64,000 nucleotides of DNA from Setoptus koraiensis (lineage: Eukaryota > Animalia > Arthropoda): contig CM106586.1 in NCBI GenBank assembly GCA_048013815.1, positions 16,988,001 to 17,052,000 on the forward strand, given 5' to 3'. Every line of letters starts with the position of its first letter. Position 1 is the stretch's first letter. Of the stretch, positions 7,132 to 64,000 are shown piece after piece. The position numbers and the translations under genes are program-made. The notes under the pieces are model-generated. The model saw only the letters and a program-made list of their open reading frames with translations, was not told where the DNA came from and ran no database searches.

Positions 7132-7201
<70 letters not shown>

Positions 7202-7206
7202 CACAC
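7132..7206. repeat. (CA)n microsatellite, ~37 units with one interruption
   Basis: Read directly from the sequence. Confidence 0.97.
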
Positions 7207-26873: not shown

Positions 26874-27554
26874 GACGATTTGGAATCGATTCAAACGAAC
26901 ATCAATGGTGTACAGTTTTGAGTTTCTCAACTGATTTCCATCATTTGTTTTAATGTGTAGAACACGATTGATTGTGTAGGTGCATTTAATAATTACATTG
27001 TTTATTTCTATTTATTCTGTTTTGTTCTGGGAATCTATCATGATATTAATATGTATAGAAGGAAGAACTTCATGGAAATTGCGATGCCCCGAAATATTTC
27101 CATTGGGTGACATTATTCTGGAATCTTGTTGCCAGAGTATGCATTATTGACTGGTAGGCTAATAATGATCGCTGTGGCACGCATAGAGATGTCTCTCACT
27201 ATCAATCTACATTCTGACAAATGTGTCACTGGGACCCAGTGCAAGGGTATATCTCATATCAATGTTTGGGCCTTTTGTTTCTAACATCACAACACGATAA
27301 TGGCACTTTGGGGGCGCACAACACCAACCAACGCGAGATCGCATGCGCTTCGTTGAATCGCGTGGAAGCGCCCCTTAGTTTTATCACCATGATGCATATG
27401 TTTGCATGATACAATCTCAACTTGTGACATTCTCAAGACATTAAGACCAACCAAGTGAAAAATGAACGACGATGGCTACCAGGTCCATCTTAACAGTCGC
27501 TTATCATATATGATCGTACGATATCTATCACATGCAGCTACTCAAGCTATCTGT

Positions 27555-28772: not shown

Positions 28773-29192
28773 CGTGATATATCATTACCCTCGACAGATA
28801 ATTATTTGACAGGCCCCTTGTGAGCTCAATTTGTAGCGAAAAAGAATAATCAAATATTTTATACCAAGATTAAATGAAAACAAAATGTCCGTTAGGTTGT
28901 TTGTTGCTGCCACAATATTATTGTGCGTGCAAGGCAAACGTGGACAACATCTGAACAGAACACATGTTTTCTACTGTCACAAGGAATGAATGGAAACGAC
29001 ATGGGGTGGCCGGCCACATACGTGATTGGCGGCTTCCTCGCAAAATTATTACCATATCTAGGGAAAAAAATCTTTCACTAGAGAACATTACACATAACCA
29101 CACGCTAGCCGGCTAGAATTAGATTGTTTTGTTGCAGTGAGGGAGGGAGCGAATTTTTTTAATTAAAATATAAATGTTGCGATTCACTAGTT

Positions 29193-30224
29193 TCATTTGC
29201 TTGAGCCAGCCGGTTCTTCTGAAGTGGTTGAGACGGGAATTGATGGTTTAGTATCTTCTGTTTTGATTGGCGTTTTTATCTTGTTCGAGAATACATAAGC
29301 GTTACCGTCTGATGCGCCCACCACAAAGTCTCCCGAATCTAGATTGATGCACGACCATAGTGTTGTTATGTCAAGTGGGATCTTTTGAATGCAGCCAGTT
29401 TCCTTGTCCCAGATTCTGACTGATTTGTCCTCGCTGACTGTGACAAATCTGAAAGGTCTTTGTTTAGGTGTTTCTTCACCTGTTTTTATGGGTGGTCTCA
29501 CGATACAAATATCAAAGATGAAATTCTCATGCCCTTCGAATGTCTTAAGTATATTACCATCCATTGACCAAAGTATTACTGAGGCATCGTTTGAACAACT
29601 GAGAAATTGTTGACCGTTTATCACTGCCAGACCCCTGACACATTCTTTGTGGCCCTCGAAGGTGCCAAAGTTTTGTCCGTTGTTTACGTCCCATTTTTTG
29701 ATTAATTTATCCGCTCCGCCAGTCAAAACAAAACTCCTGGCCACAAAGGCAACACTCCAAACAGAATAGGTGTGACCTATCAATGTGAAAGTGGGAATTT
29801 TATCTAACCAAATAATCACTGTACTATCCCAGGAGCCGCTGATAAGTACGTCTTTTTCATTACAAATCCTAAAGGCCAATGAACAAACGGGACCGGTGTG
29901 TTTAATCAAGGTGTCTATTGGTGCTGATTCCATGAGGGTGTAGACATATATGTTCATGTCATGACTTCCTACGTATATCTCTATTTGGCCTGATTTAGTG
30001 CGCCCATAGCACACTTTCGATATGAAATGGGTGCTGCCAACGAATTGTTGCGTCTCTACATGATTGCTAGTCGGATCATTGGGGTCCTCCAATTGAAATA
30101 GACGGGCTAAACGATCCCTTGAACCGGTCACAAAACCTCCGCCTGGATATGCTGCTACTGAGCGGACGTCCTCTTTGTGGCCACCCAACACTTGCTTGAT
30201 AAGGAATTCGTCACTGACACTCAT
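29193..30224 (-). CDS. PLAA: WD40-repeat protein resembling the N-terminal propeller of PLAA/Doa1, without PFU and PUL domains
   Basis: GHKEDVRSV, VTGSRDRLARL, ISGSWDSTV, GHKECVRGL, FLSCSND, GHENFIFDI and VTVSEDKSVRIW follow the PLAA WD40 pattern; ORF stops ~340 aa in. Confidence 0.7.
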   Translation of the reverse strand: MSVSDEFLIKQVLGGHKEDVRSVAAYPGGGFVTGSRDRLARLFQLEDPNDPTSNHVETQQFVGSTHFISKVCYGRTKSGQIEIYVGSHDMNIYVYTLMESAPIDTLIKHTGPVCSLAFRICNEKDVLISGSWDSTVIIWLDKIPTFTLIGHTYSVWSVAFVARSFVLTGGADKLIKKWDVNNGQNFGTFEGHKECVRGLAVINGQQFLSCSNDASVILWSMDGNILKTFEGHENFIFDICIVRPPIKTGEETPKQRPFRFVTVSEDKSVRIWDKETGCIQKIPLDITTLWSCINLDSGDFVVGASDGNAYVFSNKIKTPIKTEDTKPSIPVSTTSEEPAGSSK

Positions 30225-33200
30225 GTTGGAATAGTAACAATGTGTCGACAACGTTGAGTAACTGTTGATTGATTGTTGTGGGTTAGATCAGGAAACGATC
30301 CTCAATAATAAGGGTATACAATGCAATGGGCGGCCGAGATTGACAACTCGTGACAGCTTCGACAAAGATGATTATTTCTCTCAATGTGTAGTACAAAAGT
30401 TACACAACACGCTCTACAATAAAATTTATCACAGAGATCATATGCTATTAGCGCGCCAAAATCAAACTGCCAAAAATCAATTTTTCCACTGTGTCAATTA
30501 GGCCCGACGTCATTAACGGGACCTCAAAAAAAAAGAGAAAAAAAATGACCTGAGAAATGGTTATCATCAACAGATTGGTAGCGTCTTATTACGTAACCGT
30601 CTTGTAACCCGTCTTGTCTGAAGCAAATATTGTCGATGACAAGTGACCTATTTGAGCGAACGTTCTAGTTTTTTCAACCCGAACAGCATCGAGGCGCCTT
30701 TTGAATGACAAGTTACACGACAGACGAGCTTAACGTTGATGTCAAAATTGTTTGCCGAATGAACTCTAATCGAAATTAGAGCACCGATGTTATCACAAGT
30801 TAAAGCACTGTCAAGAGCGGTGCTTATCCATTTGATGGTGACGACTTTCATTGTTGGCAATTCGCGTGCAACTCTAATCTCTACAGCAGCCATTGCCGAG
30901 CGCTATTCACTATTTCTATTGCAACTTACAAACTTTTTTTCAACGTACACTCATGTTTACATACATTTTGCACACTTGATTCAATTTGTAACCGGATACA
31001 GTCTTTGTACACTGGCTAAATGTGTCTGAATCTCGTATCAATTTGTTCTCAGTTTGCAGTCAGAAGTCATGACATATACATTAGCCAAATATGACGTCTA
31101 TGTCATGTTTGCGAACATCATGCAGGCGTACTTCATTTAGAGCTTGTCATGACATGTAGCTCAAAGTGTGATATGAACAATGGAGTGTTTTATAACATAT
31201 GCTTCATGAGATCATTTTAGTTGGCGAGCTGAGTGAAAAATGATGAAAACTTTGGAAGAATCATCGTCACTCTATGATTCACAGAGTGTAATTCTTAGAG
31301 AAAACTGCTAAAGTGTACTGTTTAATTGAGCAGAACTCAGAGTAGTATATAGACTCTCTATATTTCAAAAGAATTCAGAAGAAAATCACGCAATGCAGCG
31401 AGTAGAAAAACTATAATGCGATGTGCTGCAGTCAGGGATGTGATTAATGGACTTTGGCATCAGCTTCTTGAGAACTTATCAGACGACTAGAGGGTGCATT
31501 TTCACGAGCATTGAAGTTTTGATTCGATCAGTTTAACGACAATATTGTATCATCAATGATGAAGTAGCACGAGAAATTTGCATTTTTTTTTTTCATGTGA
31601 TTAGATTGAATTCATTAACTAGCCAACTTGAAGCAGTTAGCGCCCGTTAAATTGTTTAGTTCTCGACTTCATTGAGACGGGCGCTAATAGGCATAGCATC
31701 ACCTGATCAATCTTCATCCTTGGATGGCTCCTGGAGAAACTGCAGCCCATTCAATCTAATGTATGCGCCTTGAATTCTACATTGCCCAATGACTGAAGAG
31801 AATACCTCTCGACTTGTTCGCTCGTTGTTGCAGGAACGTCTAGATTTAACGATTCATGCTAGATCTAATTAATTTGTTTAGTCAATGAGTCTCGCACAAT
31901 ACCACTCGGCTGAGTTTTGTATTATACAATAAACCATTCGAGTTCATACTCTGCTGCTCAGATTATTTTGGCATCGTGTATGAGGATCGCCGCCTAGCTG
32001 GTGCTCGGTATCAAAAACTTTCGAAATGTTTTCTTGTTTTGCACTTACTGCTTTTATTGATGCTTCACCGGCCCCGTCTAGAGAGGTATTTCGTTCGGAG
32101 AGGATCGCACTAGATATCTGATGTAGAATGTCTGATAAATTAGCAGATGAACGTCCATTAGAAGCTGCAATATTTGGTGTTGCTTGATTAGTAATCCTTG
32201 TAAGGCATCAATCATTAAAAGAAAAACACCATGTCTGCCATAAATTGACTTGACATGAAGACATGACTTAGTTGACTCCATCGAATATTCGTCATATCAC
32301 ATCCTTGCTGAGGCACTGACGTGAGCAGACTAACTATTGTGTGGGTTAGTCAACTAGTAACCTCGTATAATTGAGCATTGTAATCAGCTAATTGTATTTA
32401 ATAAACTGATTTCATCCTTAGTCATCACAAACAATGACATGAGTGGATATGACCGGCATAACTTAGTTCTTCAAACTTATCTGACAATATGGCCTATGTG
32501 ACAAACATTGCTCCACAATTACAACACAATTAGAGAGCCCGCTTAAAACGCCTCTGCAATTTAACTCGAGAAAAGGTCAATGTTCTTTCAATGAACAGGT
32601 GCCAATGGTCTTGTTGTTTATAGTTTCGCCATAAAGATAAAGACTATGGAAACTTTTCGGCGATGCTGTTCGGTAGTAGTAATGAGACATACCTATTTTT
32701 AACACAAAAACGAGTTATGTGTTTAACAAGATATGACAACACTGATGCGGCATAGTATTGAACTAGAACTAGTAATATTGGTGACTATCAGTTTACAGAA
32801 TGATAATAAATAAGGCATGACAGAATTAAGAATATGTGTGGTCATGTTGCTTGGAAAAAAAACTTGTTCTTTTGATTTCGTTGTTGCATCCACCTCCAAG
32901 GAGCAACATGCTTCACTTGTGACACTGTTTTTTTCTCTGGTTATTTGTGCGTTTTGCGACACTCTAATCCAGCCAAATAAAGATAAATCTAATATTCGCT
33001 TTCTCTCTGTACCTCTGGAAAGATCTTACTAATGAAACATAAATCTTCAGCTAGCCCATCCAATGTCTGCCCTTGATGTAGAAATAGATTCTATTTTTCA
33101 TGTTTTAATTGTGTTCAAGTGTCATCAACCTTTCTTCGTGACGAGTCACTTGAATTGCTATTACATTATCGGTTGACCATTCAACTCTTGTTCAACAATG

Positions 33201-33983: not shown

Positions 33984-36900
33984 ATGTCCCGCTTACAACG
34001 AATACAATATCTATTATCGGTTGTGATATTTGCAACAAGTTTAGTTGCAATCAAATCAATTTTGGGCGAATTCGCACCCACAACGGTCAAGTTGAGCGGC
34101 GGTGCCAAAACGGCCGAATCATCAAAACAATCAGGCGCAAACAGTGAGATCTCACCTTATCGACCTAAACAACAATATATTGAGCATGGCGCTTATGCTG
34201 ATGCAATACAAAATCAATGGAGCAATAGTCAGATGTTTAAGTATGGACGACATCCTGACATGATTGCCGCCAACTCAAATGCTGGCGAAACAGAGATAGA
34301 GGCCCCGAGAAGAAAGGATTCAGGATCCACAAATGGTGGTGGCCAGGCTCAAGGCGGTAGACAAGCCGGATTGAGGTCGCTGTTTGAGCTTATTTCTAGC
34401 GGTGCAGGCAGAAATAATGACGACAACGATGATCAAATGTCGGACGACGAAGCTTTATATCTCGGTGATAGATCTCAGCTAGAGGAAAATTTGAGAAATT
34501 ATCAGCTACACAGTCCGAAAATGGAAAAGTTTCAGCCAATTAGAAGCGGCTACGACGAACGAGCCTCGTACGAACATCAGCAACGTTATCAAGCGCAGCA
34601 AGAACAAAACAGCCAGCAACAAATCAAGAATGTCGGCCCAGAGGAGCCGGTTGAGCCCAGCAAGCGGTATCCTGTTGCAACTAAAGAAATGAGATCTCCG
34701 TCCAAAGAAAAGATAAGAGACGAAACAGAACAGATCGACGAACAGCATTCCTCGGCCTCTGACACTGGCTATTTGAGAGACAGTGATAGAGGTCGGTTGT
34801 TCGAGCAGCAACAACAATCTCAACGAGAGAGCGCAAAGCAGCCAGAGAGAGCGTTTGTGCAACCCGTTAACGCCAATGTCACATCGTCATTGTCTGACGG
34901 ACCCTTTTCCCCGCAAACAGCAGAGGAAATGAGAGAGGCCCCTCCGAGATTTAGCGGTGGCGATACTTTTGGCAACAGAAAACTCTCTTATGGGCTCACG
35001 AAAACGGATCTGGCCATAGAGTATCTGAGGAGCATTCTCAAAAATAGACAGAGTCTGCTCAGGGCGGCCACCGCAAAGTTTGACAACCAAGGTAACCAAG
35101 TGTCTGGCGCGGAATTGTCGCCAAAGTCAAACTCAACCGATAGCCAGTCGCCAAGAGAGCACAGTTATGCCTCGAACAACTTTACGACGAGCGCCAGGAA
35201 CAAGCACGAAACAGGTAAGACAAACCCGATTGATTCTAGCAGAATAACATCCTTTGAGAGAGCGACATGGTAATTCTTTTTCTTTTGCTGTCTGCATGTC
35301 AGTCAAAGAGGCCCCAGCGGTTTCATCTGGCTACCAGGACAAATTTGAGTTTCCAGTGCTGGAGGCCGGCAAGGAAAAAGCTAAATCCCACACCTATCAA
35401 GAGTCGCAAGCCGACAGCTACGAGAAACATCTGTTGTTGCAACAGAACATCGATGAATACAGACGAAAAGTGGCGGCCAACAATCAATTTGTTCCCATAC
35501 AAACAATGGCTAGCATGGAGGAAAAGTTCAACGAGCAACAAGTGCAAAAATCACAGCAGCACGCCAGTATAGATAGAGAACCAATTTATCAATATCCGCA
35601 GGCGAACAACGCGCCAGCGGAAAACGTCACCGCGCACCCTGTTCGTCCGTCGCCGCCGCCCGTTAATTTTTTGCCCGCTTCCGACAACCAAAGCGAAAGT
35701 CTGAGCAAAGATTCAGTTGAAAAGTTGCACCAGAATTCGGGCTTTCCCCATCTGAGTCACGGCACTCCGCTCGGGGGCGATTATGTTGAGAGTTTGGACG
35801 AGGCACCGCGCGGTCTCAGGTCCATCATGCAACAGACGCAAGAGCTGGCGAAGAGCAACAGAAGCGATTACGGCATCGCAGACATCGGTCACAGTGGCCA
35901 GCAAGCGAACGAAATGAAATCCGCGATACACAGTCTGGGAGACATCTTGTTCACGTCGACAGAGCCTCGAGTAGAGTCCAAAATACCCATTCCGAACGAG
36001 TACAAGAACGAGCTTGTGGCACCGCCGCAAACATTGTTCAGAACAATGAACGATCCTCGGGCTGGCCCGATATCAGATTCCTCGCCGTCGGCTGGTCAGC
36101 GCCCATACGCTGACCAGCCTGACAGTGGCGCAAGTTTGTCAAAACAATCTCAAACTGTGCAACTCGAATCCTCGTCACCGGATTCCGGAAATGTGGCCAA
36201 GGTGGCTGCGAGCGATAAAAACGTTCAGTCATCTAACGTCCAGTCCAATGGCACAACCAAGGCCGCCGAAAATGGCCAATTGGTGGCAGCGTCGCCTAAA
36301 CGACCACAAGACGCTGTTCACTCGGTGCGCTTGAACACTGACGCCCTGATCAAGCAAATTAAGTCAGATCAAAACAACTCTTACCATGCAAATACTGGCT
36401 CATTTGTGGGCCAGGGCGAACCATTGGAGCCCAAGGAGACCAAGGCAAATTTCAACTTTTTCGCCGAGCCCGCTCACGATTCCGAAGCGGACATGTACGG
36501 GCCCGACATAAAACTGTCAAACACCCTGTATGGTTTGCATGGCGCCGAGCAGTCTCTCACCGACCAAGAGGTCGAGGCGATCCGTCAGCAGTTGTTCTTG
36601 CAGCAGCATCAGCAGCAGCAGCAGCCTAAGGGGGCGCTCGGAGCTGGTGCCAATGAATACTTCCAAGATAATCTATCAAATGTTGGTGTGAATGCGCCCG
36701 TCAATCAATACAATCCCTATAGTGTTGATGCAGGCATGCCTATTAGAGACAACGAATATATGGTAACGACTCCTCAAGACGACACTAGTGGCGAAAAAAA
36801 ATACTACTCCATGCCGGACACCGAAATCGGCCATCATTATCAGCAAGCACCCGGGTTACAGTTTGGGCAGGCCGGCAAATACGGCGCTCAGTCAAATGTT

Positions 36901-37977
36901 GCCAACAATCAAGATGGCAACTTCAAAGAGATTATCTACAACAGTAACAACAACAACGCCAGACCAATTAATTTACCTCATGCGAATGTTTTCTCTCACC
37001 AGGAACAACTCGAGCACCAAGACTTCGCGCAGGCATTATCGGGTATAATTAATGATCACAACAAAGCGGCCGGTTACAATTTGGCGCCCATCAAGGCCTC
37101 TCAGCATGAGGTGCCGCTCATTAGAGGCGACTATGGTGGCGCAAACAGACACGAATACGGCGAGCAGCAGCAAAACAACAACGGGCCGCCACAGCAGCAC
37201 TCAAATCAAAAGCCAATTTATTCCGGCCAGCAAGACAGCAGAAATAGTGGCTATAATCAAGACGACATGAGAGTTATGGACAGTTTCATGAGCAATGTCA
37301 GAAGCGAGAATATCATGGATGGCAGCGCGCTGGACATTGGCCAGGCTCAGCCACAAGTGCTCATAGAGAGCCTGGCAAACGGGGCCCAGCGAGAGTTGCT
37401 TACCGGCAAAGAGGCCGGCGTGTCGTTGTTCCAGTCGCCCTCGTCGCTGTCTGCCACAGATTTGCAGAAAGCATTGGAGGAGATTGAGAAGACAACGAAC
37501 ACAAAACAAAAGTATAGCGACAACAACAGTTTTAGTCTAATGAGCTCGCCGTTGATTAAGCCGAAAAAGAACGACACTGTGTCTTCGAAGAAGCACCAAT
37601 TTACGAACGGAGCGGCAGCGACGCCAGCAGCAGAGGACGACAGCAAAAAGAAGAGTCTGATTGTGTATCTGAACCATCCTCGCCTCAACGACATTGTGCC
37701 ACCGTCGTCGGCCGCAAACAAGCAACAATCAACCAATAGCGACGGCTACAGTCTGGCGCAAACAATTGGCGTCGACGACATGCCCGACCTAACCAAACTG
37801 GGCTCTGGCTCGGCTGACAGCTTTTTCGCCGGCGACGCCAGTGCCAACAAAACGGACACTGACGGTTTGTCCGTGGTTGTGGTGGGCGACGCACACAAGT
37901 ACAAAAAAATCGTTCTGCTCATCAGCTCCAAATCGGGCGGCCTCAAATTTTTGCCCATGATCAAAGAGATGTCGTAG
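33984..37977 (+). CDS. Large (~1300 aa) secreted low-complexity Q/S/N-rich protein of unknown function; exons 33984-35214 and 35303-37977
   Basis: Two long overlapping ORFs joined in phase by G|GTAAGA...CAG|TC; N-terminal hydrophobic signal-like segment; no domain recognised. Confidence 0.8.
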
Positions 37978-38858
37978 ATGCGGCCCGAAGCGATGGTGCT
38001 TAGATAAGCGTAATTGTAATTGAGTAATCGCTTTGTGATATATGTATAAATATGTAATAAACACTATGGAAACACCAACGAGATTATCGGATCTAGATTG
38101 TGCGTTATGCAAGCTACGTGCGATAAAATTATGTTTGGGGTGGCGCGAGCCAACTCACGCCAACACTAACTGTTAGTGACTAGCAGCTGGCCGACACGTC
38201 CAGACTAGATGAACCGCTGATAGTGCACGGCTAGGAGTGCTCGAGTGGAGCCCCATTGGGGACCGAGTTGGCCAATGGTTTGTCGCGCTGATGGTTTGTC
38301 GCGCCGAGTTGACGCAACAGAGAAATGGTGCGCGTTGTGTAAAAAACACACAAACAAGATGATGATTAAAATCGCTCGAAACTGGCCACAGTTTGTCAGA
38401 AATGGCGTGATTTTGTGCGCTCGGTGCCACAATCCATTTGTTGTGTCAGTGTTGCACGCCTATAATTGTGGCGAGGTCATGGTGCGGCAACTCGCGGGCA
38501 ACTAAGACAAACAAAGGGCTCGCAATTGGCCCCTTTCACACGGATGATAGAGACACATGCGTTTGCAGTGGACCAAAACCAATAATAACAACATTGGGCG
38601 CTCGTGTTTGCCAAGAGAGGTCAAAGAGTTGTGCCCAGGTACTTGGCTCGGCGTGCGTCGAGTGCCGCGATAGACGGGCAACAAAAGTGAAAGTTTTCCT
38701 CGGACCCGGTTCGTGTTGTGTATTCAACGCTGACACGGCTCGCCCAAAGACGCTCGAGTGCGACTTATGATGCGGTGGAGTTGTTATTATTATTGTTATT
38801 GTAGCCCCGGCGCGTATTGTTTGCCCAAACATTGGGCCGTCGGAATTGACTCGAGCAC

Positions 38859-38902
38859 CGGAGCCCGGCAGCCCGAGCGCCGGAGCCGAGCAGCCCGAGC
38901 GC
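38859..38902. repeat. 22-bp GC-rich tandem dimer
   Basis: cggagcccggcagcccgagcgc followed by cggagccgagcagcccgagcgc. Confidence 0.85.
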
Positions 38903-39882
38903 CAGAGTTTGCCCGCTCGAACCTGTCTCAGGCCGTGCGAACAGCGCGCCCCATCAAAGAATTCGCGATAAATGGCCGCTCGCGCGTCGGCGCTATGATC
39001 TGGCTGACGGGTGGCGCGGCAACAATCTCGCCGATGAGTTTCAATCGTTCCGAGCCATTGATGAATTAGTGCGCCGCAGCATCGCCGCCGGATCGGTCTA
39101 GCCAAGCGCCCCAAACATGGCGCATAGCACACACTGGCATAGCTGGCGGCAATCACATACTGCACACATTTTGCGTATGTATACATGTGAGTGAGCGGGC
39201 TCGCGAAGGCTTCTTGCCTCCACTTGTCATCTGTCGCTTCTCACATTGTTTGACGTGTCTAGCAACTTGCAAATTTATCCGATGCATTATTTTGCAGCTC
39301 CACACATTCACTGTATCACGGCAGTGTGTGTGTGTGTGTGCCGTATTGTTGTCGTGCCATAAAAAGCGCGAGAAAAAACTCTGCTGGCAACTGTGGCAGC
39401 TCGCAAATGCACATGGCTTCGTCGCGCTGGCCAGCAGCAGTTCTTTTTAAGTGGCGCATGTGTTTTCCATTTTACATGACACAACAACGATCATCGTCGC
39501 CATCCAGCAGCAATCGCGGCTCGCACACTCGCTGCCAGTGGCGCTGCTGGTAATGGCTCGTTTGGCAGCCTCTGTCGCTGGCTGTTTGTTGGTTGTTTGT
39601 CGGTTGTTGTCGTTGTTGTCGGTTGTTGTTGTTGTCAGCGTTGGTGTTTGCTGGTGTTGGTGTCGTGGTTGCGAGCGAGCGAGCAAACAGATCGGCTGGT
39701 TGCGAAGTTCCGAACACAACCACACATAGCGCAACTCCACTGTGTGACACACAGTGGAGGCAACAACAGCAGCAACAATTCGTTAGAACTGGCATATACG
39801 CACACTGGTGCTGGGCCAGCGCAGCGAAGGGGCGCATAGCGCATGGGACTTTGGGCGAACAGTGGTGCTTGTGTAGATCTGG

Positions 39883-39944
39883 CCCCAGCGCTCGCTCCGC
39901 AACCCGACGCCCCAGCGCTCGCCCCGCAACCCGACGCCCCAGCG
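39883..39944. repeat. 27-bp GC-rich tandem repeat, ~2.3 copies
   Basis: ccccagcgctcgc(t/c)ccgcaacccgacg repeated. Confidence 0.9.
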
Positions 39945-41858
39945 GCGGGCGACGGGCAGCGGGCCGGCCCCGCCCGCCAACCGGACTGTCGACGCGACCA
40001 GTCCGGCCACACCGGTCGCGACGACACCGCCCCTCGCAAGTTCCGGTTCGCGGGCGGCTCCGCCAGCTTCGACGTGCGAGCGCGCTGCGCTGGCCAGCTT
40101 ACACTCTGTGCCACGCGAACGCCGCGATGACGCACACTGCAACGCCACGACTGGGGCCCGGAGGCACCTCGGGCACAGGAGCACAGCAGACGTGAAACGG
40201 GGCTCGTGTGCGCCGCTTGCCCCCAACTAGGCGGTGGTGTGCAGTGTTCGAACGGACGGGCTTTTGTGCTATGGCGCTCTGTCCATGTTATGCTCAGTGT
40301 CGCAGAGTGCGCAGACCAGCTTGGTCCGCGCACCCCCATCCAGTCCGCTGGCGGCAGGCTCAACTGTGGCCACATCCATGATATAAAATGGCTTCACAAT
40401 TGCTGCGTTCAGTCAGCCACATTTGCGCACAAATGCCCCACGCCAGACACACAACTGCGTGTGCACATCTTGCGTGAGCATGTGCTCTGCTCGTCGTGTG
40501 GCCAATCATGAGCGACGCCCATCGCTCATGGGCAACGTCTTGGGCCAGGGGTGCTGCGGGGCTGGGGCGCGCGCACACAAAAGTTATTACGCTCGCGCTC
40601 GCGCACACACACACACACGCACCCCAAAGCAGTCCCATATCCGAGAGGAAGAACGGCGCGAGGGGAGCGAAATTTGGCGCTTACCAACAGGCACCATTAG
40701 AAGTTACACAAACACACACACACACACACAGTATCGCAAACGGTGACGATATCGGGCCGCTAAAACTCGCTTGCATCCTGGCTCAAGCGAGGCAGCCATA
40801 AAAATACACAGAAACACTCATAACATTGCGCGTTGTGGACACACAAGCGCATAACTGGCACAACGCGGGGCCAACGGGCGCTCGCGGGGAGTGTGTGTGC
40901 GGCGGGGGGGGGGAGGCGCGAAATGTGTAGATTACATTGGACATGGTGTGCACTGTGTACAGGGCGCAAAATCGAATCTTAGATTGCGAATGCGCTAGTT
41001 TGTTTGGGCAAACTATAACGAACTGTAACGAACAGACTATAGTTCAGGCTGTGCACAGCAGATCGGATCGAATCGAATCACTACGACACAAACAAACGCA
41101 CACACACACACACACACACACACTCACGGCCCGAAATCGAACAATTGGTAGCGACCCAATATAAACACGCATGACCCACACGAACAAGAGCCAGCGAACT
41201 AGAGGGGGCCAGCAACAACGATGATGCAAGTAATCAACTGTTCTCTAGCCTGCACATACATTGGCACCAATTGGTCATCGCCTGTCGAATAATTATCAGT
41301 TATTATTATTAGTTGAACAGTTAGTTAGTGGCGTAGTTATTGTTTTAGTCTTGCATCACCAGCTATTAGCGTGTAATTAGCAGCTCAAAGGAAAAACAAT
41401 ACATCAATATATGCCAAAAATCTCACCGCAGCTTCCATAGTTTAGTCATCGCAACAACAGCTTCGCAAACCACAACCGCAAGTTGAGACCAGCACAACAA
41501 TACGACAGTGTAAATTTAATTTTAATTTAAAACAATCAGGCTACACAAATCGGCTTGGCATCAGGTGTGCGACCCGTGAGGAGAATGTGAACAGGAACAA
41601 ATCGACGGACATCATTCAATTTACATGCGCCTATGCGCCTTGTGACCAACTTAATCAACTTGCATCGCACACTGTCTACAAACAACATATCATACGCAGA
41701 AATTGAGACACACAAATCAATCGACTGCTAGCACACAACTATCTCTTCCACCACTGAGCACTTCCAAGAAAAATCTTGCCAAAAAACAAGATTTGCCAGC
41801 AGAACCAAAAGCTCACCACCGTCATCCATTCGCAGCTCGCTTGATCAATACAATCAAA

Positions 41859-43894
41859 ATGTTGGGCTGTATCAAATACCTTGTGATCCTATACAATCTC
41901 ATATTATGGGTAAGTAGATCAAACTCGCCAACTGTGTCACCCCAAATCACACATTATCCGAACCTCGTTCGTAACGATCGGCTCGATCAGTTCGTTGATC
42001 CCTCTGAGCACACACTTATACGATAATAGATAGATCAATGTGGCAACACTGATGGCAGACACACACAGGTCATGTCTCTCGTGTCCATTTCAACCTCAGT
42101 GATGAGGTTGAAATGGACACTGAACCAATACACACTAACACGTGGCCACACACTACATGTCCTATTGATATTATTGGGTCAGTAGAGTTTATTGACAAAT
42201 ATCTACACACTTAAACAGATATTCAGACATATTATTATTAGTCATAATAGTTATATGGTGTAACAGTGGAATCTTTTGAGAGGGCTGTCACGCAACTCGT
42301 GACAGCTATCAGATTGATGTTTGATGTACCACGAGTATTCCGTGATACGGCGCTATCATCATTCAGTTTATTACCCCGTCACACAATCACATTAGGCACA
42401 ATATAGAAGGACAATAGATCAATCAACATTCTTTTTTTATGCCTATATGACAATCTAGCTGCAAAAAGACTACTTAGCCCATTCGGCTATCTATCAAATG
42501 GGTTCATTGATTACACGCAATGCAATGCATATGCTGTAACTGTGTTTTGAGCGTAACATGATGCTGGCTATACCTGTACAACAACTTTACTGTTCTACAA
42601 ATAGGCCATCGCTCTTTTTCCATTGACCACAGTAGTGACCATTGTGCAAGAGGTTATCATCATGAGCCACTCTTGACAATGCCATCCTGACTATATAGTG
42701 AACTCGTTTATAGTGAACTCAAAATCCAAAAAATTCATTGCCGAATTATTAATGCCACTTCCTTTTATATTGCTATCATTCCACGTGCCTGCAGTTACTT
42801 GGTATTCATATTCTAGGACTGGCTATCTATTTCTACGTGGATACATTAAAATATGTTGATATAAGCACGTTGTCATGGCCAATCTATTCGACTCTGTTCA
42901 TAGTTGTAATCGCCATAGGAATTCTTGTTACGATGGGTAAGTGTAGATCAGGGAAACTTTTTACAAGTCTTGATATAAGAGCATATTCACTAATTTGTTT
43001 TTATTATTCTTAACAGTTGGTTTTTTCGGATGTTGCGGAGCCATTAAAGAGTCATCATGTATGCTTGGACTGGTAAGTAAACTTGAACTGTCTGGCAATA
43101 TTCCTTTTATCCATATGTACAAACTGAATTTCTAACCTTTCATCATCTTGTCATCAACATATGCGCATCACCAATAGTATTTCCTCCTATGTGTCATAGT
43201 TTGTGGTTCTTGTGGTGCAGCGCTATTTTGGGTGGAGCAAAACACTTTACCTGTCAAGGGCTATCTGCAAGAGGACATTAAGAAGATTATTCAAAAGAAT
43301 TACAGTAAACAAAATGATAGTATGACAAATTTGATCATTGACAAAATACAAAATGACTTCCAATGTTGTGGATCGACAAACTATACTGATTGGTCTAACT
43401 CTTGGCAAAATAATGGAACTGGAAGACCTGACATAGGTATTAACGGAAATGGGCCAGCATATATTAGTCCAAATTATGCGCCAACTGCGCGACAGTATTC
43501 TAACTCTAATCAACAACAGATACAGTATGCAAGCAGCAACACTGTAAATCAAGGCATCAATCAATCGCAGCAATCACAAATTGTGTCCACATCATTTAGG
43601 GTACCACTGTCATGTTGTTCGACTAGAAACGACAATCAGTATCAACAATGTAAGCAGGCAGTCGAGAAGTATGATGGTTTTTCAAATCAACAACTGCAAC
43701 AAATCCTCCCACGAATTACTGGAGTCAATTCTGAGGGATGTGTGGATAAGGTGCACTCTTATTTAGCCGCCAACTCACTCATATTGATAATAATTGGAGG
43801 CATTTGTATAGGTCTACAATTCTTGGCCATTGTATTTGCTTTTGTTTTATGTTGCGCTATAAATAGAGCCACAATGAGTGACGAAGAAAAGTAA
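41859..43894 (+). CDS. Tetraspanin; exons 41859-41909, 42795-42936, 43017-43072, 43178-43894
   Basis: GCIKYLVILYNLILW, GFFGCCGAIKESSCML, IQNDFQCCG, VPLSCC and GCVDKV, four TM segments; junctions in phase. Confidence 0.93.
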
Positions 43895-48139: not shown

Positions 48140-49746
48140 ATGATGCCCCATCAAAGCGTCCCCGAGGCCTCCAAGCCGACCCTCTCAAGCGGCCCATCGA
48201 CACCCACCAGTCATAGCCTATTGGATCCACTAGCTGGAGGTAAAAAGTATTATCGTTCATCTCATCATAGGATATTTGTTAATAGAAGCCTTAGTTTAGA
48301 GAAGATTCAATTTTTCGGTTTTGATATGGATTACACAATTGCTGAATATAAATCACCAGAGTTTGAGGCGTTAGCCTTTAAACTTGCCTTACACAAACTT
48401 GTTGACATGGGTTATCCTACAAAATTGGGCAATATTGAATATGATTCCTCATTCCCTGTTAGAGGTTTATGGCTAGACACCTTATATGGCAACTTTCTCA
48501 AAGTAGATGCTTATGGAAATATTCTTGTTTGTGTCCATGGACTCAAGTTCTTAAAAACGTAAGTAGCAATTCATCGACAACAAACGAACACGAAATTACT
48601 CCAAAAAAATCATTGAGCAACTAATCTTTCCAACATTCGCTCTCTTATCATAGATCGGAAATTTTTCACATATATCCAAACAAATTTGTTCAGATGAGTG
48701 ACTCACGTATTTATGTACTGAATACTTTGTTCAATCAACCCGAAACAGCCGTATTAGCACATGTTATCGATTTCTTCAGCACCTCGAGTGATTTTGATAG
48801 AAGCTCGCCCTATGGAGTTAAAGACAACAAGGCTAACCTATTCATGCCTTACAAAAGTATGTTTCAGGACGTTCGAAGTGCATTCGATACAATACATGCT
48901 GATGGTTCCCTCAAACAGCAGACTGTTGACAATCTAGACAAATATGTCAAAAGAGATGAAAGAATTCCTTTGCTCTTTGACAGAATGCGTGAGAATGGCA
49001 AGAAAACTTTCCTCCTCACGAACAGTGGTTACAAATACACCGATCAAATAATGACATATTTGTTTAGTTTACCAAGTTGCAAAACTCGAAGTTGGACCTC
49101 TTATTTTGATTTCATCATTGTAGATGCTCGAAAGCCATTATTTTTCGGCGAAGGCACTCTCCTGAGGCAAGTCGATGCCAAATCAGGAGCTTTGAGAATA
49201 GGCACTCACGTAGAAGATTTTTGTGGACCCTTGCAACCAGACCAAATATTTTCCGGAGGAAATTGTGACACTTTAACAAAATTAATGGGAGCAAGGGGTC
49301 GAGATGTGCTATACGTCGGAGATCATATCTACGGAGATATACTGAGATCTAAGAAAATAAGAGGGTGGAGAACATTCTTGGTTGTTCCCGAACTTCAGCG
49401 AGAGCTCGAGGTTTGGTCGGATAAGCGTCACTTGTTTCAGAGGCTATCCGACCTAGACATTAAGTTGGGTGATGTATATAAAAATCTCGACAGTAGTTGC
49501 AGACAAAACCCAGACATTAGTCAGCTTAAGAGTAAGATACGAGAGACTATACACGAACTTGACATGTCATATGGTACACTAGGAAGTATTTTTAGGTGTG
49601 GATCAAGGCAAACACATTTCGCTAGCCAGATTGCTCGTTATGCTGACATATATGCTTGTACTTTTTTAAACTTGTTCTACTACCCATTTTCCTACATGTT
49701 CAGAGCTCCAGCTTCTCTGTTGCCACACGAATCGACAGTACTCTGA
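48140..49746 (+). CDS. NT5C2: Cytosolic purine 5'-nucleotidase (cN-II); exons 48140-48558 and 48654-49746
   Basis: [12 protein letters not shown] motif [49 protein letters not shown] and RYADIYA. Confidence 0.96.
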
Positions 49747-52111: not shown

Positions 52112-52375
52112 AATCAATCGTGTCCTACACATTGAAACAAATGATGGAAATCAGTTTAGGAACTCAAAACTGTACATCATTGCTGTTCGTTCGAATCGAT
52201 TCAAAATCGTCATGTACCTCAAGAAAACCATGCGAAAAAGTAGACATTTATATATTTTCAATCGGATATCGCGATATCTGACACTAACAGTGTGCAAGTG
52301 GTGCCACAAGTCAATTGCAGTCGTGCAATGAAGCGCCTTTTTGAGGATCTATTTAGTGATTACAATCGACTAATA
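52112..52375 (+). pseudogene. Inverted copy of the nAChR 5' UTR and exon 1 (source 26973-26697) with a 13-bp deletion
   Basis: Manual alignment; for example gcagtcgtgcaatgaagcgcctttttgaggatctatttagtgattacaatcgactaata is identical to the nAChR sense strand. Confidence 0.92.
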
Positions 52376-52675
52376 CAATGTATTACAATAGAAGCAAGGT
52401 GACAGTCATGCATCTCAGTAATTGCATACAAAATAACCGCAATCTTTTGTGGATTCTTAAGAACTACAAATCGGATTTCCAAGGACAGTTTTGACCAGCA
52501 TGCAATTCGGGAAAATATTCTGCTTTCATAAAATTCTACAGTTGAGGGATAGTTGATCAAATGTTCTGCGAGGCCAAATAGTGTCAGTATTAGATAGAAA
52601 TCTTACTAGTTTCGCATGGATTTTCGATTGGATCACTGACACAAAGAGAGATTGATAAATATATCGTGATGACAC

Positions 52676-54098
52676 TCACATGGTTTTATTTAATGCTTGG
52701 AATGAGACGTTAGGTGAAACCAAATTTGACGACAATCTATTACTCTCCAATTTTCCCATAAAGGCGCTCAACTGATCTATCGAAACTACGGTTACGATAA
52801 CCAATAAATTAAGAGTGATAATATGCTTTATATCCGGTTTTATCCAATATGTTGGTCCAATGCAGCATATGTCCTCGACAAGACGTCTCAGTAGACGTAT
52901 GTCATTCTTTTTCATCGACTCGTTAAATGCATCAGGCATTTGATCCGTGTACGCATCCTTTAATCCAAAATAATAATTGTTCTCCAACAGATCCAACAAT
53001 CGTCGAGAATTCTCATGAATTCTCTGATATCCATCAACTATCATCAAAAAGAAACTTGTTGATCTGGAATAGTTCAACAGCAGACCTATGGAAACACTAT
53101 GTTTTCCTGTCCGGAATGCGTCTAACAAAGTGTAGAAGCGTGGTGGCATGCCTAGTGCTACATACAAACAAGTTATGAGGCAAGTTATGCCAGCCTTTTC
53201 TCTGATCAGTAGCATTACATCACGAACTTGCATAACGGTGTCCAAAATGACTGTCACAGGTAAGACATTCCTTCTGGCTATCAATAGAGCTATGCGATCC
53301 GACATATGCAATGTTATCCTATATATGATGTAATATATCGAGAAGTGATTGCAAACAAACATGTGCCCGTCAACCACTGGTGATAATGATTGGAACAAAG
53401 ATTTTCGTCCAGCAGTATAGCTGATATAAAATCTCCAAACGTTTATGACAACCCATATATGAATAATATAACCATAATTCCTTGCAAATTCTTCTAGACT
53501 TCTCACAAGTTTCTTGGAGATACTTCGACTTGTCCTTTCCGCCGTTTGCTCACTGCGAATTAGAGCTAATACACTGCGGGAAGAAAAAGATCACGATGTG
53601 AGTATCTCGGCTTCTGTTAACTCTAGATGGTTGAAATTTTCATACTTACCTTCTGTGGTGTATATCGCAGCCGTCACTCTTTTTCAAGATCAAATCAAAG
53701 TAATGATAATTCAACACTCCTACCACAAATGTTGCAAAACTGTTCACGAAAAAAAAAATGTGTGGAGCAAGAATCAAGAGGCAAAAACGAAACTTTTCAA
53801 CTCCAGATGAGTTTCTGATTGAGCCTAAAAATATTCCTTTCGGCAATCTAACTTCTTTGGCGACCATATTGCAATAAATGACATATCCGGTCGTGAGTAA
53901 TCGTAGGATTGTGCTGATTGCTAGAAGATTGGTTAATTTTAGTGAACCTGTTAGTTTAAATATCGATTCAATCCAATAAATGCGATCTTTCAGTGTTTTT
54001 CGTGTTTTCTCATTTCTAATTTTCTTCGGATCACCAGCGATAGAAAATTCTGTTCTTCTCTTTGGACATTCGCAATCTCGAGATTCTTTAATTGCCAT
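52676..54098 (-). CDS. Multi-TM gustatory-receptor-like gene, array copy A (448 aa if the 53649-53574 intron is spliced); exons 54098-53650 and 53573-52676
   Basis: Paralog of copies B, C and E; the two ORF-track pieces join in frame across a consensus intron. GR assignment is inferred from the hydrophobic pattern and the C-terminal TM7-like segment. Confidence 0.72.
53572..53660 (-). mobile_element. 89-bp insertion with TA duplication and imperfect CAC...GTG termini, carrying a 76-nt spliceosomal intron (Introner-like)
   Basis: Absent from paralogs B, C and E; TA at 53570-53571 and 53661-53662; donor AG|GTAAGTAT, branch CTCAC, pyrimidine tract, CAG. Confidence 0.7.
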
Positions 54099-55165: not shown

Positions 55166-56497
55166 TCACATGGTTTTATTTTGTAATGTAAATGAGGCGT
55201 TGTGTGAAAGTAAATTTGTCGACAATGTATTGCCCACTATTTTTTTCGCATGGTCTGATAGCTCATTCATCGAGATAACAATTGTGATAATCAATAAATT
55301 GAGAGTAATGAGTTGCCTAATATTTGTTTGCAACCAATTCGATTGTCCGATGCTGCAGATATCCTTGACCAGACGTCTCAGCAGACTGATGTCATTCTTT
55401 TTCGTCAACTCTTTCAGTGCAAAGCGCATTTGGTCCGAGTTAGCATCGGTTGTTCCAAGATAATAATTGTTCTCTAACAGATCCAACAACAGTCGAGAAT
55501 TCTCATGAATGCTCTGATATCCAACAATAACCATCAACATGCTACTTATCGTGGTGGAATAGTTCAACAATAGACACAAGAAAACACTATATTCCTCCTT
55601 CCAAATTGCTTCGATGATGGTGTAGAAGCGTCTAGCCATGTAAAATACTATATGAAAATAAGTTATGTACCAAACTATGCTGACCTGTTTTCTGATCAGT
55701 AGCATTACATCACGAGTTTGCATAACGGTGTCCAAAATTACTGTCATAGGCAGGACGTTTCTTCTGACTATCAATAGAGCTATGCGATCCGACATAGACA
55801 AATTTATCCTATATATAATGTAATATATTGAGAGGTGATTGCAAATGTTTATATAAGCGTCAGGAATTGTTGATATTGTTCGGAAAAAAGGCTTTTGTCC
55901 AACAATGTAACCGAGATAAAACCTTGGAAACATTGCACCAAACCATGTGAAAACAAAGTAACCATGATCTCTCAGGAGTTCTCTCAAACTTTTAACAATG
56001 TTTCTGAAAATACTTCGATTTGTCCTGCCCGCTGTTTGCTCACTGTGGACAGAAGCTAGCATGTCGCACCCGTCACTCTTGTTCAAAATCAAATCGAAGT
56101 AATGATAATTCAACACCCCTGGCACAAATGTTGCAATACAGTTCATGAGATAAATAATAATTGGAACAATGAGCAGAATGAAATAGCGAATCATGTCAAT
56201 TCCAGCCGAGTTCTTGAACGAGCTAAAATATTTCACTTTCGGCAACCTAGCTTCGTTGGCGTACATATTGCAAAAAACGGCATATCCGTTTATGACTAAT
56301 CGTTGAACAGTGTTGATTGCTAGCGAATTGGTTAATTTGAGTGAACCTGTTAGTCTAAATATCAATTCGATCCAATAAATACGATCCTTCAATGTTCTTC
56401 GTGTTGCTTCATTTTTGATTTTCTTTGAATCGCCAGCAATGGATCTTTCCGACCTTCTCTCTGGGTGTTCGCGATTTCGAGATTCTTCAATCGCCAT
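55166..56497 (-). CDS. Multi-TM gustatory-receptor-like gene, array copy B (443 aa, intronless)
   Basis: Intact ORF; shares TLKDRIYWIE, LNYHYFDLIL, MSDRIALLI, IHENSR.LLDLLENNYY and KNDI.LLRRLV with the other copies. Confidence 0.8.
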   Translation of the reverse strand: MAIEESRNREHPERRSERSIAGDSKKIKNEATRRTLKDRIYWIELIFRLTGSLKLTNSLAINTVQRLVINGYAVFCNMYANEARLPKVKYFSSFKNSAGIDMIRYFILLIVPIIIYLMNCIATFVPGVLNYHYFDLILNKSDGCDMLASVHSEQTAGRTNRSIFRNIVKSLRELLRDHGYFVFTWFGAMFPRFYLGYIVGQKPFFRTISTIPDAYINICNHLSIYYIIYRINLSMSDRIALLIVRRNVLPMTVILDTVMQTRDVMLLIRKQVSIVWYITYFHIVFYMARRFYTIIEAIWKEEYSVFLCLLLNYSTTISSMLMVIVGYQSIHENSRLLLDLLENNYYLGTTDANSDQMRFALKELTKKNDISLLRRLVKDICSIGQSNWLQTNIRQLITLNLLIITIVISMNELSDHAKKIVGNTLSTNLLSHNASFTLQNKTM

Positions 56498-58182: not shown

Positions 58183-59515
58183 TCACATGGTTTTATTTAA
58201 TGCTGGTAATGAGACGTTATGTGAAACCAAATTTGACGGCAATCTATTACTCTCCAATTTTCCCATGAAGGCGCTCAACTCATCTATCGAAACTACGGTT
58301 GCGATAACCAATAAATTAAGAGCGATGACATGCTTGATATTCGGTGTTAGCCAATCTGTAAGTCCGATGCAACATATGTCCTCGACGAGACGTCTCAGTA
58401 GACGTATGTCATTCTTTTTCATCGACTCGTTAAATGCATCAGGCATTTGATCCGTGTACGCACCCTTTAATCCAAAATAATAATTGTTCTCCAACAGATC
58501 CAACAATTGTCGAGAATTCTCATGAATTCTCTGATGTCCATGAACCGTCAGCGAAAAGTACCCTGTTACGCTGGTATAATTCAGCACTAGACAGAGGCCA
58601 ATAATATGTTTTCGTGTCCGGAATGCTTCTAATATGGTGTAGAAGCGTGCTGGCATGTTGATAGCCATCAGCAGATAACTTATTAAGCAGGTTATGCTAA
58701 TCTGTTGTCTGATCAGTAGCATTACATCACGAACTTGCATAACGGTGTCCAAAATGGCTGTCCTAGGCAGGACGTTTCTTCTAACAATCAACAGAGCAAT
58801 GCGATCCGACATATGCAATGTTATCCTATAAATGATGTAATAAATTGCGATGTTTTGGCTCATTATTACATGAGCGTCAGGTAGTGTTGATAATGAGTCG
58901 AATAATGATTTTTTTTCAACAATATAACTGAGATAAAATCTTGGAAACATTATGGAAAACCACATGTAAGCAATATAACCATAATTCCTTGCGAATATTT
59001 GTATACTTCTCACAAACTTTCTGATGATACTTTGACTTGTCTTGCCTTCTGTTTGCTCACTGCGAAGCAGAGCTAATATATCGCAGCCGTCACTCTTTTT
59101 CAATATCAAATCAAAGTAATGATAATTCAACAAGGCGACGACTAATGTTGCAAAACTGTTCACGAAAAAAAAAAGTATGAGGGATAAAGACCGTAAAGAA
59201 ATATCGAATCATGTCAATTCCAGCTAAGGTTTTGAATGTGCCCCAATGTATTGCTTTCGGCAACTTTCCTTCTTTGGCGATCATATTCCAATAAACGACA
59301 TATCCGAGCATGAGTAATCGGTGGACTATGTTGATTGCTTGCAGATTGGTTAATTTGAGAGCACCTGTGAGTCTAAATATCAATTCGATCCAATAAATAC
59401 GATCTTTCAATGTTCTTCGTGTTTCTTCATTTCTGATTTTCTTCGAATTTCCAGCAACAGAAAGTTCTGGTCTCCCCTTTGAATATTCGCAATCTCGAGA
59501 TTCGTCAATTGCCAT
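58183..59515 (-). pseudogene. Gustatory-receptor-like array copy C, +1 frameshift at a T10 run (59165-59174)
   Basis: 1333 nt = 444 codons + 1; removing one T restores a 443-aa paralog. Could be a real frameshift or a homopolymer error. Confidence 0.7.
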
Positions 59516-60684: not shown

Positions 60685-60897
60685 ACCGAAGGTGAGGATA
60701 CTGGCCAAGAGGATAAGGGTAGATATTTCATGCCTCATTCAGACAAATATAGACAGCGATGTTTCTGTTCGCATAATTGTAATTATAGCAATAATAACGT
60801 TAGCAAGAGCGAACGTTTTCCCATGAATTGCAGAGGCAATGTTGATTGCAATCAAAACAGATAATTCAGACAACAGACTACTACAATTAGTTGCCAG
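60685..60897 (+). pseudogene. Inverted, ungapped 213-bp copy of nAChR intracellular-loop coding sequence (source 25427-25215)
   Basis: Manual alignment gives 185/213 identities; translates as TEGEDTGQEDKGRYF...CSHNCNYSNNNVSK... with one stop. Confidence 0.93.
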
Positions 60898-60959
60898 ATT
60901 TCACCCCTCGTGGTCAGATGTTTGACTCATTTTCACATTGTTGAGTTATTTGGAACTCA

Positions 60960-61150
60960 GAGGGTAGTAGTCTTTTAGCGAAGGTTGGGATAGATATAAG
61001 CCAATTCATTCAGAAGTAGAGACAATGCTTATTTATAAATTTTATAATATATTGCATAAAAATTACAAGTAATTGTGTAAACATCAGGCACCTCCGACAA
61101 TGATCTGAAAATAGGTTGTTGTCCAATAACATAACGGGACAGGGACAAAC
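60960..61150 (-). pseudogene. Remnant of another receptor-array paralog (copy D)
   Basis: SRYVIGQQPIFRSLSEVPDVYTITCNFYAIYYKIY aligns with copy B GYIVGQKPFFRTISTIPDAYINICNHLSIYYIIY, followed by stops. Confidence 0.6.
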
Positions 61151-61419: not shown

Positions 61420-62775
61420 TCACATGGTTTTATTTAATGCTGGTAATGAGACGTTATGTGAAACCAAATTTGACGGCAATCTATTACTCTCCAATTTTCC
61501 CATAAAGGCGCTCAACTCATCTATCGAAACTACGGTTGCGATAACCAATAAATTAAGAGCGATGACATGCTTGATATTCGGTGTTAGCCAATCTGTAAGT
61601 CCGATGCAACATATGTCCTCGACGAGACGTCTCAGTAGACGTATGTCATTCTTTTTCATCGACTCGTTAAATGCATCAGGCATTTGATCCGTGTACGCAT
61701 CCTTTAATCCAAAATAATAATTGTTCTCCAACAGATCCAACAATCGTCGAGAATTCTCATGAATTCTCAGATATCCATCAACTGTCATCAAAAGGAAAGT
61801 TGTTGTTCTGGAATAGTCCAACAACCGACTTATGGAAACACTATGTTTTCTTGTCCGGATTGCGTCTAACAAAGTGTAGAAGCGTGATGGCATGCCTAGT
61901 GCTACGTACAGATAAGTTATGAGGCAAGTTATGCCAGCCTTTTCTCTGATCAGTAGCATTACATCACGAACTTGCATAACGGTGTCCAAAATGACTGTCA
62001 CAGGTAAGACATTCCTTCTAGCTATCAATAGAGCTATGCGATCCGACATATGCAATGTTATCCTATATATGATGTAATATATTGAGAAGTGAATGGAAAC
62101 AAATATGTGACCTTCAACCACTGTATATAATGATTGGAAGAAAGATTTCCGTCCAGCAGTATAGCTGATATAAGTTCTCCAAAAGTTTATGACAACCCAT
62201 ATATGAATAATATAACCATAATTCCTTGCAAATTCTTCTAGACTTTTCACAAGCTTCTTGAAGATACTTCGACTTGTCCTTTCCGCCGTTTGCTCACTGC
62301 GAATTAGAGCTGATATATCGCAGCCGTCACTCTTCTTCAAGATCAAATCAAAGTAATGATAATTCAACACTCCTACCACAAATGTTGCAAAACTGTTCAC
62401 GAAAAAAAAAATGTGCGGAGCAAGAATCAAGAAGCAATAACGAAACTTTTTTACTCCAGATGAGTTCTTGATTGAGCCTAAAAATATTCCTTTCGGCGAT
62501 CCAGTTGCTTTGGCGACTGGATCGCCGACCATAGTGATATAAATAGTGACATAAATGAAATATCCGATCACGAGTAGTCGTAGGATTGTGTTGATTGCTA
62601 GCGAATTGGTTAATTTGAGAGCACCTGTTAGTCTAAATATCAATTCGATCCAATAAATACGATCTTTCAATGTTCTTCGTGTTTCTTCATTTCTGATTTT
62701 CTTCAAATTTCCAGCAACAGAAAGTTCTGGTCTCCCCTTTGAATATTCGCAATCTCGAGATTCGTCAATTGCCAT
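61420..62775 (-). CDS. Multi-TM gustatory-receptor-like gene, array copy E (451 aa, intronless)
   Basis: Intact ORF from the ATG at 62775; paralog of A, B and C. Confidence 0.8.
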   Translation of the reverse strand: MAIDESRDCEYSKGRPELSVAGNLKKIRNEETRRTLKDRIYWIELIFRLTGALKLTNSLAINTILRLLVIGYFIYVTIYITMVGDPVAKATGSPKGIFLGSIKNSSGVKKFRYCFLILAPHIFFFVNSFATFVVGVLNYHYFDLILKKSDGCDISALIRSEQTAERTSRSIFKKLVKSLEEFARNYGYIIHIWVVINFWRTYISYTAGRKSFFQSLYTVVEGHIFVSIHFSIYYIIYRITLHMSDRIALLIARRNVLPVTVILDTVMQVRDVMLLIREKAGITCLITYLYVALGMPSRFYTLLDAIRTRKHSVSISRLLDYSRTTTFLLMTVDGYLRIHENSRRLLDLLENNYYFGLKDAYTDQMPDAFNESMKKNDIRLLRRLVEDICCIGLTDWLTPNIKHVIALNLLVIATVVSIDELSAFMGKLESNRLPSNLVSHNVSLPALNKTM

Positions 62776-63486
62776 TGTCAATCATCTATTTCTTCGTCAA
62801 TTTGTGTTCTATGATATGGTAGAGATTTGAAAAGAAGGCCAAACTCAATTTCCAATCGCGGTGTGGTCGCAAGAATCACTGATGATTCTAAGGAGAATAG
62901 ATTGGATTTCTCGATGTTCTATCGGAGTGCATCGACATATCTTCAATATCTTAACTTATGGACTTTGATGCACGTCCATTTCGTGTATCAAAGTATAAAT
63001 TGTACAGCCCTCGCATTTTTATCGTGTGCGCTTCGGGATTGGCTTGTCAAGATTCGGGATCAACATACATATGATCGTTTATTTCTCGTTTGATTTCTTC
63101 TATACAAACATTGCTTGACAGCTACTCTGGATATGGATAATGGTAATGAAAAATAAATTCATTACATGACAAGCGACTCCACTACACAGGTATATTTGCA
63201 CGACATTTTCTGGTAGACGGTTACGCTCAATTAAATAGTCTAGTTGATCACTATTCCTTGTGTTTGATGTGACATCAATTCCTAACGATAACTACATTTT
63301 CACGTGTCTCATCGGTCTAGTTGGTTTCTAGTAAGCTGTCTCGATTCTTATGATGATTTGTTATCAATTACTTCAGTGCAGAAAGGAGAGGAATAGTCGC
63401 TCGAAAATGACATTGTATTTATACCGTTACCCTGTTTAACATTTATAAATAATGGATGTTCTTTACATCACGGAGATAACACGGTT

Positions 63487-63948: not shown

Positions 63949-64000
63949 ACCGAAGATGAGGATACTGGCCAATAGGATGAGGGTAGATATTACATGCGTC
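63949..64000 (+). pseudogene. Second copy of the nAChR loop fragment (truncated by window end)
   Basis: acc gaa gat gag gat act ggc caa tag gat gag ggt aga tat tac atg cgt = TEDEDTGQ*DEGRYYMR vs nAChR TEDENTGEEDEGRYFRR. Confidence 0.85.

Follow-up and report, generated by a model that had tools for sequence, protein, structure and literature searches.

Copy A belongs to a tandem gene family in the 64,000-nt stretch of DNA analysed here (hereafter the window), and its coding sequence carries an insertion that its relatives lack. The locus raises the question of whether this insertion is a newly acquired intron and, if so, where it came from. The features at the insertion site were the following:

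52676-54098, minus strand: copy A, a member of the tandem family, with open reading frame (ORF) pieces at 53646-54098 and 52676-53506
53571-53661, minus strand: 91-nt insertion specific to copy A; the TA can be placed at either end
53649-53574, minus strand: predicted 76-nt spliceosomal intron (GTAAGT...CAG) with the donor AAG/GTAAGTAT
53650-53660, minus strand: 11-nt upstream exonic remnant of the insert, left before the donor in the predicted mRNA
53553-53559, minus strand: second CGCAGTG, an in-frame alternative acceptor (CAG at 53553) 21 nt past the first

The insertion and its predicted intron

In a DNA-level alignment of the four copies (MAFFT), B, C, and E had one gap, 91 columns long, that fell exactly at 53571-53661 of copy A. 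An earlier note on this DNA had described the site as uninterrupted in these three paralogs, with an insert flanked by TA in copy A only, and the alignment bore out both statements. On the minus strand, copy A reads GAT ATA CAC CAC AGA AG/GTAAGTAT...CTCAC...TTCCCGCAG/TG TAT TAG CTC, with slashes at the limits of the predicted intron. Because the 3' junction of the insertion was also present in an independent DNA contig (X4 record 24, 53294-53606), the insertion is not an artefact of the reference assembly.

The predicted intron combined its donor with a CTCAC branch candidate (the A lying 26 nt from the 3' end), a tract of 82% pyrimidines and a CAG acceptor. Six candidate native introns of the window (93–263 nt) had signals no better than these. 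Joining the exons 53650-54098 and 52676-53573 gave 1347 nt, i.e., 448 codons with a single terminal stop, and the joined-exon translation likewise agreed with the note in leaving 15 added nt (the 11-nt remnant, TG, and one TA past the acceptor) that code for HHRSV. These five amino acids occupy residues 147–151, in a polar stretch that follows a hydrophobic segment and in which the homologues vary by indels. Left unspliced, the frame of copy A runs into a stop, as had been claimed, at the TAA within GTAAGT; deletion of all 91 nt also kept the frame. The second in-frame CAG was found where the note had placed it, in the repeated CGCAGTG, and if used, this acceptor could give an in-frame product two codons shorter than the paralogs.

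The chance that an arbitrary fragment would behave in this way was estimated with 127,818 91-mers that were drawn from the two strands of the window and set into the insertion site. Under loose splice rules (GTRAGT donor, YAG acceptor, at least 45 nt), 0.17% of them were removable in frame without a stop, and under strict rules (AG/GTAAGT, a branch motif, and a pyrimidine tract) the only 91-mers that passed were those overlapping the insert itself. Since a frame-keeping intron in sense orientation is so unlikely in a random fragment, either selection kept an insert that was spliced or the mechanism of insertion favours introns; retention of the insert looks selected. The points that speak for splicing are the strong signals, the sense orientation, a remainder that is a multiple of three and free of stops, and the position of HHRSV at a stretch tolerant of indels. 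Of 12 sequencing runs found, the four analysed were DNA-like, with depth even across intergenic DNA, and a 4605-nt contig passed unspliced through the native intron at 48559-48653; splicing of 76 of the 91 nt is thus a prediction from sequence.

Relatives of copy A and a second genomic context

A tblastn search of the window with paralog B recovered A, B, C, and E, each as a full copy, together with a fragment near 61017-61133. The three full paralogs of copy A were:

55166-56497, minus strand: paralog B, an uninterrupted 443-codon ORF
58183-59515, minus strand: paralog C, which has no interruption at the site and carries a 1-nt frame shift near 59179
61420-62781, minus strand: paralog E, uninterrupted at the site

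The frame shift of paralog C falls exactly at a T10 run and would reflect either a pseudogene or a homopolymer error of long reads. Among 5.8 billion proteins only two further homologues were found, P0001 and P0002, both from one Logan assembly, 44–48% identical to B and with ORFs that run uninterrupted across the insertion site. This assembly represents a sister species, as its DHODH is 92% identical and its gene order (WD40-DHODH-nAChR) is the same; in L003 (Logan SRR33593474), positions 3554-8817 keep the WD40-DHODH-nAChR order of window positions 23500-30300. For L001 and L002, no synteny with the array could be demonstrated. The insertion was therefore absent from five of the five other family members, and the state of the site in the sister species fits a gain rather than a loss, in keeping with the earlier note. 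A gain in A is far more economical than five precise losses, each of which would have had to remove the 15 exonic nt as well, and these comparisons support an insertion that is derived and young in copy A.

Sliding identity between A and E was 93–99% from approximately 53830 to 52450 and 80–86% upstream, and the insert lies approximately 170 nt inside this young tract rather than at its edge. An initial BLAST impression that the insert sat at an A/E mosaic breakpoint was ruled out on these grounds, the high-identity tract beginning approximately 170 nt upstream. Downstream of the site, A and E differed at 53 of 891 coding nt (dS 0.077). The array is itself an identity mosaic of A, C, and E (53830-52450; 54330-53958 / 53032-52683), in which A and E are 93–99% identical over the 3' two thirds, while identity between C and E reaches 98–100% over the 5' third and again at the 3' end. 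Such a pattern suggests that array members have undergone gene conversion or unequal exchange with one another.

The insert is shared with a second genomic context, which was recognised from contigs that fit the window at this stretch only. The shared stretch is listed below together with contig depths, summed for each of the two bins spanning the insert:

53570-53661, minus strand: 92-nt stretch shared with the second context; loose contig ends fall exactly at both limits
X1: summed depth 216 / 323, single-copy depth approximately 129
X2: summed depth 16 / 32, single-copy depth approximately 17
X4: summed depth 18 / 52, single-copy depth approximately 14

The 92 nt consist of A, 89 nt, and TA, and no variant letters occurred inside 53570-53661 in any run. 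Contigs fitting the window only here extended beyond 53661 by 12 nt in X1 and 66 nt in X2, and beyond 53570 by 255 nt in X2 and by 8 nt, with a different flank, in X5; this 8-nt flank could stem from a third context, from a difference between strains, or from an error tip. Of the second locus, only 30-nt contig ends are available: in gene sense, its upstream flank reads TGAAACAAATTTTTCACCATATCATCAGAG, followed by ACACCACAGAAG and the intron, and its downstream side reads CAGTGTA followed by CAATACGTAATGAGTATAGTATCATCATGC. GA precedes the shared stretch there and TA follows it, so that any duplication is at most 1 nt. The flanks gave no match to the window or to the host gene family, and joined across the intron they were open in two of the three sense frames. 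The other loose contig ends (at 53718, at 53758, and before 53661) were verified as contigs of paralog C or E.

The limits of the shared stretch coincide to within 1 nt with those of the insertion in copy A, as expected if A was the recipient or if both are insertions of one discrete unit. Contig depth sets an upper bound of roughly two to four copies for the insert, too few for a burst. No further copy was found in the 64-kb window or in L001 and L002, and the exact insert pattern gave no match in metagenome contigs or prokaryote genome contigs, as expected for a mite sequence. A search of 53300-53900 against Rfam returned no family match.

One contig each in X1 (depth 62.7 vs. approximately 129) and X2 (depth 4.2) joined 53661 directly to 53569, skipping exactly the 91 nt; the A-specific depth of X2 around it was 2–8. 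No such contig was among those of X4 and X5 (the other sample); Logan contigs, in which bubbles are popped, show presence and not absence. The contig lacking the 91 nt is A-like, as it had no listed mismatch at 53568, a position that distinguishes E, and a contig of C type appeared separately as a loose end. It could be an empty allele of A, and hence a sign of a polymorphic gain, or a paralog beyond the end of the window.

Origin of the insertion

We slightly favour, as the best explanation, an ectopic copy into A of an intron-bearing fragment from another locus, made during repair. The source stretch would have been a complete 76-nt intron with exonic stubs of approximately 12 nt upstream and 4 nt downstream, and its copy would have entered the coding part of copy A later than the last sharing of sequence between A and E. 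Capture or copying would have taken place at a double-strand break, with joins that overlap the target by 1 nt (A) and 2 nt (TA). The fragment would have landed in sense orientation with donor, branch site, pyrimidine tract, and acceptor intact, and the spliceosome should then remove 76 of the 91 nt, leaving the five residues HHRSV in a polar, indel-tolerant loop and the gene open. On this reading, we infer that the copy went from the other locus to A, that repair was the mechanism, and that splicing takes place.

Overlaps of 1 and 2 nt at the joins are the usual signature of end joining or template switching and not of a transposase cut. What would be expected of break repair was found in the absence of the insertion from B, C, E, P0001, and P0002 and in the microhomology at the joins (92 nt shared vs. 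91 nt inserted), and a possible source was seen as the second context in X1 and X2, in contig ends only. The low copy number, the target duplication that does not recur, and the want of real inverted ends argue against a mobile unit, and the stretch has the look of an intron with short exonic stubs, its flanks in the second context being open in two of three sense frames. Weighing on the other side, a discrete unit in at least two contexts would also be expected of a mobile element.

The array holds other pieces that appear to have been captured, the first of them adjacent to copy A:

52112-52411: immediately 3' of copy A, an inverted copy of the 5' region of nAChR, 87% identical to 26657-26973

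Similar captured nAChR pieces lie at 60685-60898 and 63949-64000; these are inverted, with 87–90% identity to an nAChR gene 26 kb away. Their source regions are the 5' region (26657-26973) and an internal coding piece (25214-25427), both now in the repeat unit of the array, and a contig end at 52289 continues into 26766-26795. As the copy at 63949-64000 is cut by the end of the window, the array continues past 64000. The presence of these older captured pieces in the same array favours capture of a fragment over a mobile unit.

Break repair is established as a source of new introns through fragment capture accompanied by short direct repeats (PMC3020277, PMC3296678). The insertion in copy A resembles such cases in being a foreign piece in an exon that occurs in one lineage only, has usable splice signals, and is bounded by a very short direct repeat; it differs in that the source seems to be another nuclear locus and the fragment a whole intron with exon stubs. 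Because the whole intron lay inside the captured fragment, its splice signals need not have arisen by chance. Transfer of introns from paralog to paralog by gene conversion is known from Chironomus and Aspergillus (listed in PMC3296678), and there too an existing intron was copied at the DNA level into an intron-less gene. In contrast to those cases, the flanks of the second context are unrelated to the host family, which excludes homology-driven conversion between paralogs. A third parallel is offered by templated insertions at repaired breaks, in which tens to hundreds of nt from a distant and often transcribed locus are inserted with microhomology at the joins, and which have been described mainly in cultured or tumour cells. 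The case of copy A shares the distant-locus copy and the microhomology, whereas it is germline, lies in a coding exon, and yields an intron.

The most serious rival keeps the same origin and supposes that the insertion broke copy A, leaving a young pseudogene that is silent or retains the insert with its TAA stop. We regard this outcome as unlikely, although several observations would sit well with it. The neighbouring copy C is already frame-shifted, and the host family is weakly constrained (dN/dS 0.54–0.75); the A–E value of 0.75 cannot tell whether the gene works or has recently become a pseudogene. With approximately 27 substitutions on the A branch, the chance of meeting no stop would be roughly 0.3 (a rough estimate), so that an open frame proves little. 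The pseudogene reading has difficulty with the insert itself, as a complete intron in sense orientation that leaves a stop-free multiple of three would be found in 1 in 600 random fragments or fewer, and with splice signals that match or exceed those of native introns in a gene whose 448 codons are all open.

It appeared improbable that the 89–92 nt represent a small mobile element, whether an Introner-like one or a MITE, which carries its own splice sites and inserted in at least two places. This proposal was at the centre of the earlier note, which had read the locus as a recent transposon-mediated gain; a recent gain at the DNA level was supported, while the transposon was not, given weak inverted ends, a depth that allows some two to four copies and a TA that is not repeated. 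Identical unit ends in two contexts, possibly with a third flank in X5, a TA on both sides in A, and a post-splicing residue that is a multiple of three would all suit such an element. The ends are CAC...GTG, with a weak inverted match (p approximately 0.05): the anchored alignment scored 3, a score reached by 4.8% of shuffles, and the inverted ends of the insert were not reported in the repeat search. The inverted match described in the note was accordingly weak and close to chance level, and the ends, CAC/GTG plus scattered matches, are far shorter than those of known MITEs; a Tc1/mariner-derived MITE would have inverted ends of about 20 nt or more related to an element that bears a transposase. 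A TA duplication as a trait of the element, and with it a Tc1/mariner-type MITE, also failed to find support, for the second context has GA and not TA on its 5' side, the TA occurs at A only, and the duplication at the second context does not exceed 1 nt.

Introner families are defined by many similar copies (PMC11282704), whereas contig depth caps the present insert at approximately two to four, with one other context and with none elsewhere in the 64 kb or in L001 and L002; the family that the note had envisaged did not emerge. Such families run to tens to thousands of near-identical copies that make up introns in unrelated genes, and terminal inverted repeats are frequent in them, though not universal. 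Like the Introners of Micromonas, fungi, dinoflagellates, and others (PMC11282704; bioRxiv 10.1101/2022.06.06.494994), the insert in copy A is short, brings its splice sites, and keeps the frame, but it differs from them in having no many-copy family, no convincing inverted ends, and no repeated target duplication. A bolder variant would make the 89–92-nt unit a nascent splicing-ready mobile cassette in an animal, a minimal introner with at least one very recent move behind it and still polymorphic from one mite sample to the next. We hold this to be quite improbable; if it were true, the contig of X1 and X2 lacking the 91 nt would be the empty allele.

Intron transposition, in which an excised intron is reverse-spliced into A mRNA and the cDNA recombines with the gene, is very improbable: an apparently identical donor-like copy and an insertion in sense orientation would suit this route, but reverse splicing moves the intron alone, and what copy A has in common with the second context also includes 12 nt before and 4 nt after the predicted splice sites. 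Least credible of all is an old intron lost from the other paralogs, which can invoke the high rate of intron loss in eriophyoid mites (PMC7738191; bioRxiv 10.64898/2026.08.24.746826) and was rejected on the alignment, on the uninterrupted P0001 and P0002, on the 93–99% identity of E to A on both sides of the site, and on the occurrence of the 92 nt in an unrelated context, as B, C, E, P0001, and P0002 would all have had to lose it precisely and independently, together with the same 15 exonic nt.

Host genome, host family and meaning of the probable gain

The host genome is that of an eriophyoid mite, a lineage known for intron loss; the best named matches of the DHODH in the window were from Fragariocoptes setiger (61%) and Aceria tosichella (60%), both eriophyoid mites. 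The genes of the window are mostly intron-less, in line with the statement of the earlier note that the neighbouring genes have few or no introns. A nicotinic-receptor-type channel gene at 23526-26588, for example, is one 1020-codon ORF with no intron, which fits an intron-stripped genome. The composition of the window is uneven, with a block of 48–54% GC and a strong skew of A over T at 33984-42000 in a background of 38% GC. An ORF at 33984-35273 has a signal-peptide-like start and a disordered body rich in Q, E, and S, and is followed by a 907-codon ORF; no Pfam match was found for either.

The gene that received the insertion belongs to a family of obscure affinity. No sequence match in Pfam or the PDB was found for it, including to 7tm_7 and 7tm_6, and a profile search of 1.8 billion representatives yielded no named family. 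The 35 distant relatives that were found matched only its C-terminal half, and nine of these, searched against Pfam, gave no meaningful family match. The AlphaFold model of the protein was all-helical and poor (pLDDT 44). Its likeness to gustatory-receptor-type clusters in a language model is the sole link by which the family might be regarded as one of receptors.

In Aculops lycopersici approximately 84% of genes are intron-less, with gain described as minimal (PMC7738191). Across the lineage, over three quarters of genes have lost every intron, and reported gains are likewise minimal. The results support a recent intron gain in copy A at the DNA level. Few clear intron births can be traced to a source, and how introns are gained is under debate; the intron of copy A would have come ready-made from another gene, in a lineage that is purging its introns. 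The event adds one more case to a kind of intron gain already known, and its interest lies mainly in the seemingly identifiable donor copy and in the intron-purging lineage in which it occurs. If the donor were located and splicing confirmed, the locus would document an intron gain by copying during repair that needs neither a transposon nor reverse splicing, and if the empty allele is real, this route could be dated and followed in natural populations. Copy A thus probably shows how a new intron is born.
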